Source of the DNA: Zygophlyctis sp. KS116
Taxonomy: Eukaryota; Fungi; Chytridiomycota
Length of the DNA: 29,400 nucleotides
NCBI GenBank assembly: GCA_054661495.1
Contig: BAAFSQ010000117.1
Coordinates: 1-29,400 of the forward strand
Direction: 5' to 3'
The position numbers and the translations under genes were made by a program. The notes beneath the pieces are model-generated. The model was not told the origin of the DNA and did not search any database. It saw only the letters and a program-made list of their open reading frames with translations. This document shows, piece after piece, positions 13,082 through 22,503 of the stretch (its first letter is position 1; the number at the start of each line of letters is the position of its first letter).

Positions 13082-14087
13082 TCATAACTTCAATTGTAAA
13101 AATAATAATGAAACCATGAAGATAAAAAGATAAACAATCATCCGTACAGGGTAAAAGATCAAATATCCGAATCCAAGCATTATTCTAGCAAATCCTCTAA
13201 AAAATTCTATTGGATGTCTGATTGCAGATATAATATTGTCTGGAAAGTTACTAAAAAAGTATTTTAAATCATCAATAATCATTGTCCTTGCCCACTTCAT
13301 ATCATCAGGAAAACTTAGTATAGAGTTTGCCATATGTGTTACGGCTGATAGTCCGACTGTTTTTTTTCTCAATTCTTCTATTATATCATCATCCACTAAT
13401 GAATCTGATATTTCAAGGTAACTTATGATGAGCTTTTTCTTGAAATCTCTAGTCTGTTGTGACATTTGAGACATATCTTTAGGAAATCTAATTATTAATA
13501 TAAATTTTAAGGTACACTTTCATCAGCTCAATAAAGTTTTTTTCCAATTCTTTCTTCTTTTCAATAGGTAATTCCTGTCCATCTGTATGTTCAATCTTGA
13601 ATAGTCCATAATGATCACTGATAAAATGATTATTATGAATATGCCGAAATTCTTCACGGTCACCCAAATCCCTTAAAATATCCAAAAAGTTTGATTCGCT
13701 TTTGTAATATTCACTCCAATCATACTTTTTGTAGAATCCTGCATTCAAATATCTATTATAAAGTAATCGCAAGTCATCATCCATCAATACATTGTAAGCT
13801 TCATTCAACTGCTGAAACATTTGATTTGCATTTATATCTTTATTTTTATCTGGATGTAAACTAGATATTAGATCAGATGAAACTTACCGTAGTGACATCT
13901 TCTTATAATTCCTTTTAATGGCATTCAGGTCAATCTGATCTTTACTAATCTTGAATAATCCATAGAAATCCCTCCTTAAATGTTCCTGAGTAATATGTGC
14001 AGTCGCTTCCTTATTTAATGGTAATGCATTGACCGATCGCAAACATAATGCAATCATAAGAATGCTATACAGAGTGAATTTCATCAT
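13082..14087 (-). CDS. Secretory-pathway J-domain protein (signal peptide, J domain with HPD, C-terminal transmembrane region)
   Basis: Hydrophobic N-terminus. DFYGLFKI...IKRNYKKMSLR|LHPDKN...FQQLNEAYNVL...R..Y. Introns 13861-13887 and 13488-13515. Hydrophobic C-terminus. Confidence 0.85.
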
Positions 14088-14275
14088 TTTTGTCTGCAGA
14101 TTTTACCGGAGCAGCGAATTTTACTGAGTTCGCACCCGTTCACTTTTAATTATTCTTGGCCATCATTGATTATTGGGTCATACATTACTCTTGACAATTA
14201 TTCTTGTCAATCGGTTCAATCCATTCTTGTTTAAAAATACTCTTAAAGTGATATGAACTCTTTTACGCTAGAGGA

Positions 14276-15019
14276 TTAAACAAATCCAATTATTAATAAA
14301 AATAATCTAATAATTACTGCAAATGGCATCATTAATAGACTTAAAAGACCACAAACCAAGGCTACAAAAAGATAAAATAAAAGAATAGCGAATCTAGAGA
14401 CTTTCCTAAAAGATCGGACAGGATGCATAATCGTCCACTTTGCATTATTTGGGAAATTAAACATAAAGTTTACCCATTCTTCCTTAACTTGATTATAAAA
14501 ATTTAAGAGAAGATTCCATGCTTTATCTTGGCTTGATAATTCTTTCAGAGTAGTTTCAACCTCTTCCGATATATTTAACTGATCTTTAAAGGATTTTGAG
14601 AGTTTATATTCTTCCCATGTCATAATATGATAAGCATCTGAAATACGATAGTTATAATAAATAGAACTTTGATGATTGTCGATTAATGTTGCATAAGCCG
14701 CTTCTATTTTTTGACATGTTTCTACAATTTCTGCGTCTATAGATTGATCTGAATGAAAACTAATTTTTAAACTTAATATGAGTTACAAGGCCTTTAGCGA
14801 TTGATATTCTCTTCCTAGAGCTTCAAGATCAACATTTGCTTCAGGTCTAATCTTGAATAGACTATAAAAGTCTTTGGTTAGATGATCGCCGATGATGATG
14901 TGGGTTTTATCATTTACTGTTGTTGAAGCGATTGATCCTAGATACAATGCATTCAAGAGTGACATGAAAATCAATAGATTCATTACAAAGGAAAATTTAA
15001 AATTCAATGCAAGCGCCAT
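14276..15019 (-). CDS. Tandem paralogous J-like protein (HSD instead of HPD), signal sequence and C-terminal TM
   Basis: DFYSLFKI...REYQSLKAF|FHSDQ...QKIEAAYATL. Intron 14760-14786 is at the same codon and phase as in the neighbour. Shares the NFP.N....HP...FR C-terminal motif. Confidence 0.8.
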
Positions 15020-15054
15020 TTTCACTGATGGATAGATTTGGTTGGTTGGAATTA

Positions 15055-15179: not shown

Positions 15180-16189
15180 ATGAATATTTGGAAGAATGCA
15201 AGTGATGCAACAAAAAAATCAGTATATGTTATGCTTATAATATGTGGAATCATCATCATTGTTGTGCCGACTGTTTGGTTACAAAATACTAAAAAGGCAG
15301 AAAGCCGGATGAATGGATCTACTCTAAATGCTAGTAATGCTCCAGATACTCTAATTATTGATATTAAATTATCAACAGTTGATACTGATGATTATTCGTA
15401 CACTTTATTAATGAATTTAAAGCCTTCTGGAAATTTAATGAATCAAAAAGGTAATCTAACAAGGTTTAATGGAGCAATTGATCTTTCTATTAAAGGAGAG
15501 AGATTTTCTCTATTTAGAGATTCACCAACATCTGCGATTCATTTCAAGTCAAATTTTGCTTCAGGAACATCTAATAGTTTTCCGTTTGATGCTTATATAG
15601 ATGAATTTGATATATCAGGAACTTTAATGAATGAATCTAATTCTCAAGCGGTCAAATTTATCAATGTTGTTGCTGCTTACACTGGAAGTTTTGATAGTTT
15701 TGATACTGAAGTTTCTGCTGATTCATTTCAGACAAAATCAACTGTAAGACTAAGGATTAAGAGAACAGGTACTACGCAATTTTTTTCTGTGAGTGTAGTG
15801 ATTTTAATGTGGGCTCTTTCATTAACAATTTTAACTTTGGCTGTCACTATTTGGGTTCGTAAGCGAATCGTAGAGCCTCCGGTAATTTTTAAATAAGTTT
15901 TTCTAATATACAGACGATCGCAGTTGCTGCAGGACTCTTGTTTGCAATACCACAATTAAGAAACGTTCAACCAGGAATACCATCAATTGGATGTGCATCT
16001 GATACAGTCGGATTCTTTTGGAATATGGCTTTGATTGCGGTTGCTCTTTTATTGCTAATGTGGAATTATATTATCTACAAGAAAGAAAACTCGGACACTT
16101 TTGACCTTCCCAATAGAAAAAATACCGCTTGGACCACTAAAACTTCTGGACTTACAGCATTAACCATGCCTTATTCACGAAAACCCTGA
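15180..16189 (+). CDS. DUF4436-family membrane protein
   Basis: N-terminal TM, FPFDAY motif, C-terminal TMs with LFAIPQLRNVQPGIPSIG..D. Intron 15882-15913. Confidence 0.8.
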
Positions 16190-16287
16190 TGACTTGGGGA
16201 TCTATAATTCATCAAATATCTACAATAACACCTGGAAAGCATTTTCTTTTAATAATATATTTTATATCATAGAATATAACGAATTCT

Positions 16288-18462
16288 TTAAATAGTTAAC
16301 GCTGCAAGAGAGCAATCTAATGTATCTAATTGAGTATCTAATTTCCATTTATGTAAATAAGTGCCTTCTAATGGCAGAAAATTCGAGATCTAGTATTATA
16401 AAGTTTTAACTTACCTCAATCTTGCACGAATCGAATTGAGACGAAATATCTACTTGTTCTTCTTTAGACATTGGGCAAAACGAACAAAATCCAGATATTT
16501 TAGATCCTGCCACATTTTCATCATTGCATCCAATCAAAAGCTGTAGCTCACCAGACATGCAAAGACCTTGTAATTTCTCAAAAAGCTGATAAGCCAAAAA
16601 TAAGAAAAATTCAGGATCAAAAGAAGCATAATCAGTATGCTTTAGCTGATGTGATGCATAAAGCAAGTAGTTCAAAATAGCCGCCAAATGTTGTTGAGTT
16701 TTTCTGCAGTTTTTCAAAGACGTATTTCCAAGAAAGTAATTTCTTAAAAACTTGATAATTTTCCTCCAGTCTACTCCATTAGTCAGTCAATTTACCAGTC
16801 ATATCATCCTCTTCCTTTGAAAAACTTGAAATTTCCTCATCTTCCCATCTTCTTTGTGATTCTGATATTTCCTTCTTTGTCGACATGGTAGTATCAGAGT
16901 TATTTTTACGAATTAATGCCGAAAATGCTTTAATCCAATTCGGCATAAACGTTTCACAAGCAGAAACTAAATCTGCTGTAGTGGGCGACTTCATCATCGA
17001 CAACCACTTATAATTCCGCTCATTACATGCAATTATAGCTGCATTTTTCCAATTATCTACAGTCAATACACCTTTTTCAATCTCCCTGATTCTAAATTCA
17101 TCATAAAAATACCGAAATCCCTTGACTTTTAAATTTTGTAATTCATGTGCAATCTCTAAACATGACATTGATTTAAATAACCACAAATGCATCGCCATTG
17201 TATAAGGAACATCCTCTGAAAGTAAAGAATCTACTTGCTGTCTTGAAACTCCAAATGGTAGTTTCCTTTTAAACTTTTTTGATAAATAGTTTCTGAAAAT
17301 ATCCAGTAATATTTTCATAAAAGCCTCACCAATTGAACACCCATACTGAGAAACTGTTAATAGTTTATGAGATTTTAAAGATCCTTGTAAAACACTAAAA
17401 CACGATTCCAAAAGTCTTCCTGAATCCAATTCAACCAAATCAATTCTTTCCTTTACAACCCCCTTAGAATGCCCATTTATAGTAGAAATTTCTGTAAAGT
17501 TTTGTAAACCCAGTAATATCTGACTTTTATATTCCAATTCTAAACCTGCCAGAATCATTAGAGAAACATACTGAGAAACTATTGAATAACTTGATAAATT
17601 ATCCTTTATAAATCTTGTCGTAGTATCTACTACAATCCTTTCAATATTATCATTTTGATAAATTTTAAACTTATTATTTGCTTCTATTAGTATTAATCTG
17701 AGTATCCATCTTAAAGCTCCCGTCTGATCCAATTTAGTAACATTAAAATGCACTTTAGTACATTTTAATAGCCCACAATTACTCTTTATACACCTATATT
17801 TCGAATCATCCTTTAGTATATTAGAAAAAACCAATAAATAGTAATTTGTAGCCGAGAAATATGTACAATAATCCAATTTAATAAAAATCCAAGGATTAAA
17901 TCCGAATCCTGATTCATGACACTTTGCAAAAGACCATTCTCTAATCGTTGCAATAATTTTAAAAACATCTAAATCCTGATTAAATCTTGACCGTGAAATC
18001 CTTTCAAACTGATCTCTAGCAAACGATGGCAAAACCACTATTTTTCATAAATTTAATTAAAATACATTTTCTCCTTACAGCCGGCCTATAAAACAAGAAT
18101 GACAATAGTATAGGAACATTATCCTCTGATAAGCCATCCCTAGTATTATTTTTAGACTTGAATTTTCTTGAAACCATAAAGTCTGAAATCTTTTGTAGCC
18201 CCCAACAATTTACTTTTTTCAGTTTCTCCGGACTATACAATACCCATTTTAAAACCAATGAATGATTTTCATCCCCCAACTTGAATAGCGGATCTATAAT
18301 TTGTGAATTTTTCGACTGTTTTGGGTTTGTCCGAGAGTTTGCAGTTGGATAATTTGGATTAAATGTACAATTTGATTGACCGCCTTGTACAAAAGAGTGT
18401 GCATTACCAGCCAAACAACTTTCCAGATTAATATCATTCAAAATGGGATAAGAAATCGTCAT
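16288..18462 (-). CDS. Hypothetical ~698-aa protein, 4 exons
   Basis: Introns 18038-18065, 16771-16795 and 16390-16414 join the three listed ORFs and a final exon in frame. No recognised domain. Confidence 0.72.
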
Positions 18463-18532
18463 TTTATCTACTTTTAGCGCCAATTTTATTAAAATTAAAC
18501 GGTTTTAGAGCAACGCCAAGTCGTAGGTTGGT

Positions 18533-18844
18533 ATGTTTTCTTTCAAACTATTCAATGGTCCAGCCAAACTCATTTCTTTGACTCCAGAGGAAATCAAGGT
18601 TGAGAAAATCATAAAAAAGACTTTTAAACCAACCAAAAGTCAATTAGAATCTGTGGTTGTCACCGCTCAAGATCTTAAAGATCAAGCTGATTGGTGGGTA
18701 ACTCCAGAAAAATGGAATAAAAGAATACTACATCTATCTTGTGATTTTATTGATGTAAAACAAATATCTAGAAAATCTAGAAAATCAAGGAGAAATCTTA
18801 GAAGTAGGAGAACTGTTAGATCAAGAAGGCCTAAAAGAATTTAA
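18533..18844 (+). CDS. Small hypothetical protein with Arg/Ser-rich basic tail
   Basis: 103-aa ATG-started ORF divergent from the previous gene. C-terminus SRKSRKSRRNLRSRRTVRSRRPKRI. Confidence 0.45.
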   Translation: MFSFKLFNGPAKLISLTPEEIKVEKIIKKTFKPTKSQLESVVVTAQDLKDQADWWVTPEKWNKRILHLSCDFIDVKQISRKSRKSRRNLRSRRTVRSRRPKRI

Positions 18845-18934
18845 ACTTGCTACAGTATGTACATGTCAGCACCCAGGATAAGAAATAATTTTTTTAGTCT
18901 ACCATAACCGTATGTTTACATTGAGATTTGATAT

Positions 18935-19114
18935 ATTGAGTTTGAGGGAAGAGGTTGAATTAAATCTTTCTTAGAAATGGTATTTTCTAAAACACAAAGA
19001 AAATTCAACGATTTGATTGAAAAAAGCAAACAGTATCTTCTAAGAACTGACCGCTGGGGGTGCGTCACAGTTATCAAAAAGAGAAAAGCGCATCACACTT
19101 AAACCTGGCATGAG
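18935..19114 (+). pseudogene. Degenerate fragment of the trypsin-like protease gene (copy of 21730-21932)
   Basis: Near-identical to 21730-21932, with a 21-bp deletion removing VTFAHGE (the catalytic His), a 2-bp frameshift, then truncation. Confidence 0.9.
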
Positions 19115-19369
19115 TTATGGATTATTTTATATTGTAAAGATCAATGAAATGAACAAATCTTTCTTATTGCTCTGTAACTCTATGGAAATTCAGTCATTTC
19201 TTGTTCTAGATTTCTCTAAAACTATTAGTTGTAGATTTATATTTCGATCAAGTGAATGAATACAACACTGATACTTATTAGACAATCTGATCCGATACAA
19301 TCATTAATGCATCGATTCAAAAGACCTCGAGCGCCTCTCCACGATTTCAATCCACCCCCATTTGTTTAC

Positions 19370-19375
19370 TATAAA
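19370..19375 (+). promoter_or_regulatory. Candidate TATA box of the LRR gene
   Basis: TATAAA about 45 bp upstream of ATG 19419. Confidence 0.45.
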
Positions 19376-19418
19376 TGGGGCAACTGATGCACTTTACTCT
19401 TTCAAAAAAATAAAACAA

Positions 19419-20793
19419 ATGTTTGACAACAAGATCTTCTTGACATTGACTCTTACTGCATTGATCGCTGGAGTGGAGTCTCAGGCTAATTGCACTTCAA
19501 CATCTCCTCAATGCTGCTGGGTTGTCCGATCATGGCAACTGATGGGGATGACTACTACTGTTTCTTCTACTAGTAGCACTGCTTGTTGCTCAATGGCTGG
19601 TGTGACTTGTGATTCTTCTAACAAAGTTATTAAGATTGTCTGGAGTTCTAAAGGTCTCTCAGGTTCAACGATTTTTAGCAACCAGCTCTCAGGTTCGATC
19701 CCTGGTGAAATTGGAAATTTAAGAAATTTGCAAATTCTGTAATTATTTTCTAAATTTAAATGAAAGTTGTCTTTCCTTCAATCAACTCTCAGGTTCAATT
19801 CCTGCTTCAATTGCAAATTTGATAAATTTGACTACGCTGTAATTATTTTTTAAATTTAAAATTCAAGTGATCTAAACACTAACCAACTCTCAGGTTCAAT
19901 TCCTGCCTCGATTGGAAATTTAAGAAATTTGCAAATTCTGTAATTATTTTCTAAATTTAAATGAAAGTTATCTTTTTCTAAACCAGCTCTCAGGTTCAAT
20001 TCCTGCCTCGATTGGAAATTTGATAAATTTGCAAGAACTGTAATTATTTTCTAAATTTAAATTGAAGTGCTCTTTCTAACAATCAACTCTCAGGTTCAAT
20101 TCCTCCAGCGATTGGAAATTTGACAAATTTGACTACGCTGTAATTATTTTCTAAATTTAAAATTAAAGTGGTCTTTTCAACAATCCATCATTAAATGGAC
20201 CTTTTACTGCAAAATGTGGACTGCCAGTGTAATAATTTTTATTTATAATGGTAAGATATGCTAGCAATACTAGAATTACTATTTGTGGTTGTGTATCCAC
20301 TGTAACTCCTGCTGTTCTTTTCCCTCCTGCAGGAATCCCCCTTGCTTGTCTTTCTACTGGATCTGCTACACCATTAACTAAAAGAGCTCAAGTATTCTCT
20401 CAAAACATTGGAGATTGGAAATTCACTTGCAATACTGATTCAAACAATAATGCATTAGGCAATCCATACCAGGATTGTTTGAATGCTCAACGTGCATTTT
20501 GTGACCCAACATACATTTCAGGAAATTCAACTCGTATAACTGCCTGCAAGAATGCTGTTGACACCATGACTAGAAGTTTATCACCAGTTTGGCAGACTGT
20601 TCGCAAAAACTGTGGCCAATGGTCTTTTGATGGTCTTATTGGCTCAGTGAATTCTCAAAACTGCATCAACGCAAACAATGCTTTAAAGTCTGCCTTCTAT
20701 ATCCTCCCAGATGGTACTAGACAATATGTCGATGATCCATTTATTGGCTCTGTGAATGTAGGTCTTTGGGGAAATACAGCTGTGATAGCGTAA
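19419..20793 (+). CDS. Secreted plant-type LRR protein (~401 aa): signal peptide, Cys-rich N-cap, LRR array, KR site, 6-Cys C-terminal domain
   Basis: Exons 19419-19738, 19767-19838, 19868-19939, 19968-20039, 20068-20139, 20169-20228 and 20256-20793 splice in frame. LRR consensus LxLxxNQLSGSIPxxIGNLxNLxxL. Confidence 0.9.
19680..20168 (+). repeat. Tandem array of ~100-bp units (72-nt LRR exon + 28/29-nt intron), about 5 copies
   Basis: The intron GTAATTATTTT(C/T)TAAATTTAAA...AAG recurs at 19739, 19839, 19940, 20040 and 20140. Confidence 0.97.
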
Positions 20794-20820
20794 ATGCAAA
20801 TCATTTCATCGTAAATCATT

Positions 20821-20942
20821 ACAAAAAACTCTAAAAAACATCAAAAAAACTATAAAACTCTAAAAAACAACAAAAAAACTATAAACTCAAAGAAACTACA
20901 AAAAAACTATAAAATCCCAAAAGAAAACAAAAAAACGTAAAC
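20821..20942 (+). repeat. A-rich minisatellite (~28-29-bp unit, CAAAAAAACTATAAA...) downstream of the LRR gene
   Basis: CAAAAAAAC units start at 20842, 20871, 20899 and 20928. Almost no G on the + strand. Confidence 0.8.
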
Positions 20943-21771
20943 GAATGAAACACGATCTCTTATCTATCTTAGAACTGATATCTCATGAAAAACTAAAAAT
21001 AAAATGGTTTATGAATAAAAATCTCTCACTTGCTCGTCGAAATCCCGGTGTTGAGTTCTCAAGTCAAAGTAATCTATCCATGACGATTTGTCACTGATAA
21101 TGATCCGTAAAATCATGTGTCATAACACAAATTCTTTCATTCGATATGTTTCTGTGCTGAGGGAGAGTAAGAAGAAATGTTTTTATATTATTTAATATTG
21201 AATTTCTCAAAAAAGTAGTTCTCAATAAATAAATTATTGACAAGTATTGTTTTATAATAGATTTGAATCCGGATCAGGAATATGGCTGTAAGATTTATGG
21301 TTTTGACAAAATCGTGCATTTGAAGAAATCACACTAGTATGATAAAAAAATCATTGGCTGTATTTGAATGGTTTTTATTCCCTATTGACACCATTAACGT
21401 TCAGAGCATGTTGGTTTAGTTCCGGGATATTTACCAACTAAAATCTCAAACCGTTTTTGCTCATTACGTTTAAATTTAAATAGAATACTTTCAATGTCAG
21501 TAAGCTTATTATTGTCAATTCTGCGCTTGAGTTGGATGCGATTGGGAATTGTCATAGCATACAGCACAAATAGAGAATAGACTTAATTTATTTTTCTTAA
21601 ACTAGATGACGTTTAAGATCGGACAATTCACCACTGTCTAAGTGCTCATTTGAAGCCTTGTAGACTTAAAGTACTCTTTACATTCATCATCTGAGATTCA
21701 AGGTGAAAAACTGTCACTACCACAAGAAGATTGAGTTTGAGGGAAGAGGTTGAATTAAATCTTTCTTATAA

Positions 21772-22398
21772 ATGGTATTTTTTAAAGCACAAAGAAAACT
21801 CGATGATTTGATTGCAAAGAGCAAACAGTATCTTCTAAGAACTGACCGCTGGGGGTGCGTCACCGTTATCAAAAAGAGAAGAGCCGTTACTTTTGCCCAC
21901 GGAGAGCATCAGTCTCTTAAACCTGGGATGAGCATCAAAATCTACCACATTGAAGGAAATATAGAATATGATGTTGAAGTGATCAAGACAAATGCCAAAA
22001 GTGACTGGGTTCTGTTGGAAAGTGGTGTTGATTTGTGCGAGCGTGATCCAATATGGGGACCTGTTGCTGACGGTCATTGCTATGTTCAACTAGGACTCTT
22101 TGTACCTCATCAGGAAGAGTCTCCGCTTGCCATTTCAACTGGAGTCGTTTGCTCACAGCGTCCGACTGCACTGGGCCATACTCTTGGGTCTTCTGGAGCA
22201 AATACTGGTGATTCTGGTGGTCCTTGTTTTGAAGAGTCAATAACAAGTGAATTAATTGGAATCAATGTTGGCTGCGAGAACATTCCTATCAGTATGGAAA
22301 AGGATACTGTGGCTCAGATAAATGACAAAATCTCTTCTAGATATGCTTCTAGAGCTCATATTATCCCTGTCAGTAGTTTTCAGTTTATTGAAAGATAA
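21772..22398 (+). CDS. Trypsin-like serine protease domain (Crinkler-associated type), probably 5'-truncated
   Basis: Catalytic triad motifs TFAH, SDWVLL and GDSGGP. No signal peptide. Its start (RKLDDLIAKSK) matches the segment following the Crinkler header at the window end. Confidence 0.82.
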   Translation: MVFFKAQRKLDDLIAKSKQYLLRTDRWGCVTVIKKRRAVTFAHGEHQSLKPGMSIKIYHIEGNIEYDVEVIKTNAKSDWVLLESGVDLCERDPIWGPVADGHCYVQLGLFVPHQEESPLAISTGVVCSQRPTALGHTLGSSGANTGDSGGPCFEESITSELIGINVGCENIPISMEKDTVAQINDKISSRYASRAHIIPVSSFQFIER

Positions 22399-22503
22399 TT
22401 AATCATAAAAGTGTATAAGAAACTCTATTGATAACATCAAGTTATTAAAAGATCAATAGAATACTTTGAGTGAGGGGAGGGTGTTTGTCTTGGTAAAATA
22501 GAA

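Follow-up and report, generated by a model that had tools for sequence, protein, structure and literature searches.

The stretch of DNA analysed here (the window, 29,400 nt of contig BAAFSQ010000117.1 from Zygophlyctis sp. KS116) holds a gene for a secreted leucine-rich repeat (LRR) protein whose internal repeats each occupy an exon of their own and whose presumed binding face differs from one repeat to the next. The question raised by this locus is whether such a gene belongs to a diversifying recognition system and, if so, how the diversity is produced. In our judgement the gene is likely to belong to a large family of secreted plant-type LRR binders with fast turnover in a freshwater chytrid, and the family to be a secreted recognition or effector LRR repertoire whose diversity arises in the germline through unequal crossing-over, gene conversion and diversifying selection. 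A preliminary description of the locus had placed the DNA in a zoosporic fungus, and the best named matches of a neighbouring PKA exon are indeed the chytrids Blyttiomyces and Borealophlyctis (76 %). The runs that contain this stretch are from lake, freshwater or estuary sampling, with the exception of one coded organism.

The LRR gene has an open spliced frame of 401 aa in seven exons (19419-20793, forward strand, as are all its parts), encoding a signal peptide, a Cys N-cap, plant-type LRRs, a cap, Lys-Arg and a 135-aa six-cysteine domain. Exon 1 (19419-19738) carries the signal peptide, recognised by inspection, the Cys-rich N-cap, an insertion with the word TIFS and the first half of an LRR. 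It is followed by four LRR exons of 72 nt, namely the CLSF (19767-19838), DLNT (19868-19939), YLFL (19968-20039) and ALSN (20068-20139) units, and by a C-cap exon of 60 nt (20169-20228) with the GLFN strand and the cap cysteine. Each phase-2 72-nt exon encodes one 24-aa repeat of the plant type LxxLxLxxNxLSGxIP. The six introns, all phase 2, lie at 19739-19766 (28 nt), 19839-19867 (29 nt), 19940-19967 (28 nt), 20040-20067 (28 nt), 20140-20168 (29 nt) and 20229-20255 (27 nt); the last was missing from the preliminary description, which was otherwise exact about the four internal phase 2-2 exons and their near-identical introns of 28-29 nt, introns 1 and 3 being the same at 28 of 28 positions. 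The last exon begins with a CGC linker (20256-20385) ending in Lys-Arg (20380-20385), a Kex2-type site, and continues with the six-cysteine helical domain, a putative released cargo (20386-20793).

The five repeat introns of the gene share 92 % pairwise identity, compared to 61 % among 28 predicted control introns of the window, which are AT-rich and have a mean length of 28 nt. As tiny AT-rich introns are the norm in this genome, part of the similarity is baseline, and 92 % is still far above it. An average of only 28 nt for the predicted spliceosomal introns across the window is in itself very short for a fungus. Comparison of the four internal exons gives differences at 68 % of bases in the five x codons and at 10 % elsewhere, and thus the introns are more conserved than the x codons, as had been claimed. 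The two codons before each donor also belong to the variable face, so that the intron falls within the central leucine codon of the xxL|xLxx strand. The variable words had been placed directly after the acceptors, which is correct for all units except TIFS; GLFN opens the C-cap exon and not a full repeat. Compared to the paralogue C580, exon 1 has an in-frame insertion of 30 nt (about 19656-19685), and TIFS is inside it. The insertion probably distorts the first repeat, and this copy of the gene may be a drifting allele.

RNA contigs over the gene were sparse and splicing of exactly this gene was not seen in them. The joined architecture recurs in intronless homologues from public assemblies, in support of splicing and, in the relatives, also of expression. 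An assembly artefact was rejected as the source of the array, the same architecture being found in independent samples and in the intronless homologues, and an origin as a retrocopy was rejected because the introns are retained.

The gene is part of a duplicable unit of 2.8 kb bracketed by 155-nt direct repeats (94 % identical, both on the forward strand). The left copy (18935-19089) is a truncated 5' piece of a multicopy trypsin-like gene, and the right copy (21730-21884) overlaps the start of a trypsin-like ORF. Inside the unit, a promoter and 5' region common to the family (19268-19418, forward strand) is identical over about 150 nt to that of C580 and has 13 genomic matches, and behind the stop codon there is an A-rich tandem repeat (20811-20955, forward strand), variable in length and common to paralogues. 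The trypsin-like ORF (21772-22398, forward strand) is multicopy, with a weak Pfam Trypsin_2 match and 10 genomic matches, and we take it to resemble Crinkler-type protease effectors. From the DUF4436 gene to the zinc-finger gene the distance is 6.4 kb here and about 0.7 kb in the syntenic relatives L101 and L102, in which the LRR gene is absent and an inversion is present; the LRR gene thus lies in a lineage-specific island. The island (16100-22500) is at an inversion breakpoint and has two further ORFs without a Pfam match, of 419 aa (16779-18038, reverse strand) and 103 aa (18533-18844). Nearby, at 13082-15025 (reverse strand), a local duplication cluster (repeat families D5 and D7) comprises three to four related small genes in tandem, which have signal-like starts and motifs resembling DnaJ.

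In the assembly of 12.7 Mb and 1175 contigs a DNA pattern of the NQLSGSIP type had 248 matches compared to one for the control, and the cassette motif is thus not due to chance. The N-cap had 92 and the C-domain 45 genome matches, and the multigene family anticipated in the preliminary description is therefore real. The cassette statistics that follow were drawn from 45 genome segments (166 kb) and not from every locus. They comprise 282 cassettes in 53 arrays of 1-23 units, with introns of 24-31 nt; 276 of the cassettes are exactly 72 nt long and none contains a stop codon. The words of the concave face were nearly all different (222 among 229 junctions). An own N-cap stands ahead of the array in 40 of the 53 cases, nine arrays are cut by fragment edges, and only three are truly 5'-truncated and pseudogene-like. 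No inverted or non-coding spare cassettes were found in the introns on either strand of the 166 kb. The suggested antibody-like assembly of the kind known from variable lymphocyte receptors (VLRs) found no support, since no reservoir of donor cassettes was seen in these segments.

Family members consist of a signal peptide, one to several N-cap/LRR/C-cap modules and a variable ending, which may be the KR/six-cysteine domain, a single membrane helix, a beta-rich domain, a Thr-rich stalk, or nothing. Pfam LRR_1, LRR_4, LRR_8 and LRR_14 were matched on spliced homologues, and several members are frameshifted or truncated. Most members are soluble. A single membrane helix with a short basic tail and no kinase is present in C406 (L060), C778 (L039) and C852 (L048), an architecture of receptor-like proteins that is reported to be rare in fungi. 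Fusion to a kinase, considered as a candidate, was rejected, as no kinase, NACHT or GTPase fusion was seen in the members examined; a ROC-COR GTPase was found neither in the 401-aa frame nor in the tails of the 53 arrays. The window protein has no NACHT/NB-ARC domain, WD40, TPR or ANK repeats, transmembrane helix or kinase, and ends in a globular domain. The LRR members at L059:1509-2090 (reverse strand) and in C306 end in a beta-rich domain of ~160 aa without a Pfam match, which is possibly carbohydrate-binding. At L059:3812-4855 (forward strand) an HNH_2 endonuclease ORF of higher GC content lies between two LRR family genes.

The preliminary description had passed over both the KR-linked six-cysteine domain and the interchangeability of the C-termini. 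At least 90 % of 62 homologues retain K42 and R43, and the domain behind them has 135 residues and six cysteines, five of which are invariant. Its AlphaFold2 model had a pLDDT of 94. No relatives were found in Pfam, by PDB sequence search, among ESM Atlas features or in three fold searches (best match VIA, Z 3.8). The domain would thus seem to lack a match to any known family or fold, which is no proof of a new fold. The domain also occurs alone directly behind a signal peptide, as two KR-separated six-cysteine copies behind a signal peptide and without LRRs in L018 (G000:C27) and C93, and as KR-separated tandem copies in P0062; as it is found behind a signal peptide alone and in KR-separated tandem, it is an independent secreted unit. 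The conserved dibasic site thus precedes an independent domain, as in secreted precursors processed by Kex2, and Kex2 is predicted from the sequence probably to release it. A putatively released six-cysteine domain together with interchangeable C-termini points to a design of address plus cargo.

The structure of the LRR part was modelled with P0051, a natural full-length intronless homologue, instead of the joined protein of the window itself. The model is a plant-type LRR solenoid with capped ends (pLDDT 90), and its strands carry the x positions on the concave beta-sheet, where the preliminary description had expected them. The nearest solved structures in a Foldseek search were the plant LRR ectodomains of SERK/FLS2 and PGIP.

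The five x positions had an amino-acid entropy of 3.2-3.8 bits, compared to less than 1 bit at the core. Within x codons, positions 1 and 2 were more variable than position 3, and the third positions stay T or C. The non-synonymous excess at xLxx positions proposed earlier was borne out in a codon model of 118 unique related cassettes, with an omega of 4.55 at x codons (2 delta lnL 62 compared to an omega of 1) and 0.37 in the framework, values to be read with the caution that tree-based omega is unreliable under recombination. With a tree made from the framework only, omega was 5.5 at x codons and 0.40 in the framework. The three codons after the intron had an omega of 5.3 and the two before it 2.6, the latter falling to 1.2 on a star tree, and variable convex sites had 0.57 and the core 0.07. 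In close independent pairs replacement at x sites was 0.25 compared to 0.11 for silent change in the framework, and it also exceeded silent change overall (Fisher p about 1e-6). In pairwise counts against the silent sites of the x codons themselves the ratios were weaker (0.62 compared to 0.48; 0.25 compared to 0.21 in close pairs). By arithmetic on the codon model, silent change is no faster at x codons (about 12 compared to 15 tree units), which makes local hypermutation less likely. These statistics show diversifying selection for difference at the five exposed beta-strand residues, the rest of the cassette being homogenised.

Exchange of cassettes was the other element of the preliminary description, and the data agree with it. 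The mean distance between cassettes was 0.25 both within and between arrays, and nearest neighbours were collinear in only 3 of 83 cases. Distances of adjacent segments were uncorrelated, a test that is weak alone as the segments are short. Exact duplications of multi-unit blocks occur in C610, C778 and C43, and identical tracts of 77-80 nt are common to different contigs. The promoter and about 160 nt around the cap are the same in C580 and the window gene, and C580 has two internal cassettes compared to four. In L086, from a different species, the same architecture has its own homogenised intron (91 % identity within the array, 64 % to the window). Such a species-specific homogenised intron is a classic mark of concerted evolution; a role of the introns as a fixed recombination signal was rejected for the same reason. 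Reshuffling of cassettes by recombination within and between genes is thus supported.

Variation was also seen between lake samples. In L078 the repeat-bracketed unit of the window is present twice in tandem. Identity to the window is 95-98 % in its flanks and 96 % in its intron but drops to 78 % in its last cassette; TIFS is missing from the second copy, whose cassettes are different. L097 and C80 have promoters that are 99.9 % identical over 1 kb, whereas L097 has six cassettes and a KR domain and C80 eight different cassettes and no KR domain. Both L078 and L097 are contigs from short-read metagenomes, in which repeats can be chimeric; both of them refute a single-copy gene with a fixed number and order of cassettes across strains. 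In two runs the contig depth at 20987-21759 was about half of the value for the single-copy flank upstream (50.7 compared to 98 and 24.4 compared to 41.6), a weak hint that the source population may be polymorphic for presence and absence of the bracketed unit.

The pattern of cassette turnover is observed, and unequal crossing-over and conversion would be its mechanism. The unit would be the 100-bp exon plus intron in phase 2, carrying one 24-aa repeat. Near-identical frameworks and introns would let units mispair, and as a consequence unequal crossing-over and short gene conversion would change the number, order and identity of cassettes, the symmetric exons keeping the reading frame through each exchange. 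The LRR module would then act as a variable 'address', followed in this subfamily by Lys-Arg and a small disulfide-bonded domain that is probably cleaved off by Kex2 during secretion or set free at the target. The selection pressure presumably comes from a changing partner, and diversification would take place at the level of the population, across generations.

Programmed somatic assembly as in VLRs, or targeted hypermutation of x codons, would instead produce the diversity within a clone. Such a process would fit with nearly every cassette being unique, with the almost complete loss of linkage between adjacent segments, with the third positions of x codons staying T or C when positions 1 and 2 vary, and with the somewhat raised silent differences at x codons in pairwise counts. 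The arrays are, however, complete genes with their own promoter and N-cap (the three 5'-truncated ones among 53 being pseudogene-like), inverted intronic cassettes were not found, the codon model shows no increase of silent change at x codons, the species-specific intron leaves no fixed recombination signal, and two samples, L087 and L088, have a nearly identical array; we regard this process as highly improbable. It is likewise very unlikely that high, possibly programmed reshuffling in clonal lineages provides antibody-like anticipatory binders that carry a cargo of new fold, released by Kex2, to variable targets. Diversity might also come mainly from alternative splicing, as all cassette exons are phase 2-2 and skipping of any of them keeps the frame. 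Exon skipping is rare under intron definition, which is favoured by very short introns, and the introns of 27-30 nt are of this kind. Moreover, homologous transcripts carry long complete arrays and variation is already ample at the DNA level. In the intronless contigs L092 and L094 identity jumps from about 80 % to 100 % at a point no more than 2 nt away from an exon junction, as in a splice variant, but a crossover inside a homogenised intron or an assembly chimera explains the jump equally well. Even with skipping demonstrated for brown-algal ROCO genes (PMC11378527), we see little probability that it is the main source here.

A neutral reading, in which an unstable, minisatellite-like coding repeat of 100 bp evolves with relaxed surface residues and without adaptive diversification, would explain the frameshifted or truncated members and the position of the locus in a rearranged island missing from the syntenic relatives, and exposed residues vary in any LRR. 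It is largely refuted, and left with a small probability, by an omega above 1 at concave but not at variable convex sites (4.5 compared to 0.57), by the absence of stop codons from all 282 cassettes together with the core omega of 0.07, and by x codons that are four times more divergent than the introns. Recognition of self and non-self, or of mating partners, among chytrid thalli would resemble the het genes of Podospora: the evolutionary signature is that of the NWD allorecognition genes (PMC1805685), and C406, C778 and C852 have a single transmembrane helix. Most members are nevertheless soluble, none has been seen fused to a kinase, NACHT or GTPase, and the neighbours are multicopy trypsin-like and HNH genes, which are typical of effector-rich regions, so that we give this function a very low probability. 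Within the preferred reading of a secreted repertoire diversified in the germline, the most likely driver, favoured with some reservation, is an arms race with the host, in which the proteins would recognise or inhibit surface or defence proteins of the host; a defensive role against microbes or hyperparasites comes second and is rather unlikely.

The closest parallel is the shuffling of LRR exons in Ectocarpus ROCO genes (PMC3341825; PMC11378527), which likewise encode a 24-aa plant-type LRR in each 72-nt phase-2 exon and combine exon shuffling with positive selection on the concave face, the latter here under the recombination caveat. ROCO proteins are, however, cytosolic and contain ROC-COR, whereas the chytrid proteins are secreted and without a GTPase, and have homogenised introns of 28 nt, a putative KR-released domain and no inverted intronic cassettes that we could see. 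In the NWD/HNWD genes of Podospora, such as het-d and het-e, WD40 repeats of variable number evolve in concert within and between loci and a few interaction-surface codons are under positive selection (PMC1805685). These are intracellular NLRs with WD40 and NACHT, in contrast to the chytrid proteins, whose LRRs are extracellular and encoded by one exon each, and which have no signalling domain. The VLRs of lamprey and hagfish work in a similar manner, with a capped LRR solenoid, a hypervariable concave face and modular cassettes. They start from an incomplete germline gene, which is completed somatically with flanking donor cassettes, whereas the germline genes of the chytrid are complete and numerous. 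The chytrid family thus works like ROCO shuffling and the Podospora NWD genes, and is not a ROCO, NWD or VLR.

Plant PGIP, LRR receptor-like proteins and ectodomains of the SERK/ERECTA type share the LxxLxLxxNxLSGxIP repeat and Cys caps, and differ in that the chytrid proteins have no kinase, an unrelated C-terminal domain and cassettes mixed between loci. The six-cysteine domain resembles Kex2-processed fungal precursors (killer toxins, KR-repeat proteins) in the signal peptide, the conserved Lys-Arg, the small disulfide-rich product and the KR-separated tandem copies in C27 and P0062; its lack of a sequence or fold match and its fusion to a variable LRR set it apart. Large LRR expansions with signal peptides and a proposed role in host interaction have been described for early-diverging fungal parasites, in Spraguea lophii (PMC3749934) and as high-copy orthogroups in a Lobulomycetales MAG (PMC13618815). 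We liken them by description; one-exon-per-repeat shuffling, selection analysis and a cargo domain are not reported in the parts of these sources available to us. Secreted LRR proteins have been described as rare in fungi, with fifteen candidates in 10 of 49 species, and LRR repertoires for pattern recognition were found to be almost wholly absent from them (PMC2939053). No report of LRR exon shuffling in chytrids, or of this family, was found in the open-access literature.

The family provides a convergent case of the brown-algal design of one exon for one LRR, and adds an uncharacterised secreted domain without a structural match. In a chytrid genome of 12.7 Mb the cassettes number at least 248 and the N-cap modules about 90, and their evolution bears the signature of an arms race, with single loci turning over between strains. 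How planktonic chytrids choose their hosts and overcome them is poorly known, and this family offers a specific and countable candidate repertoire.
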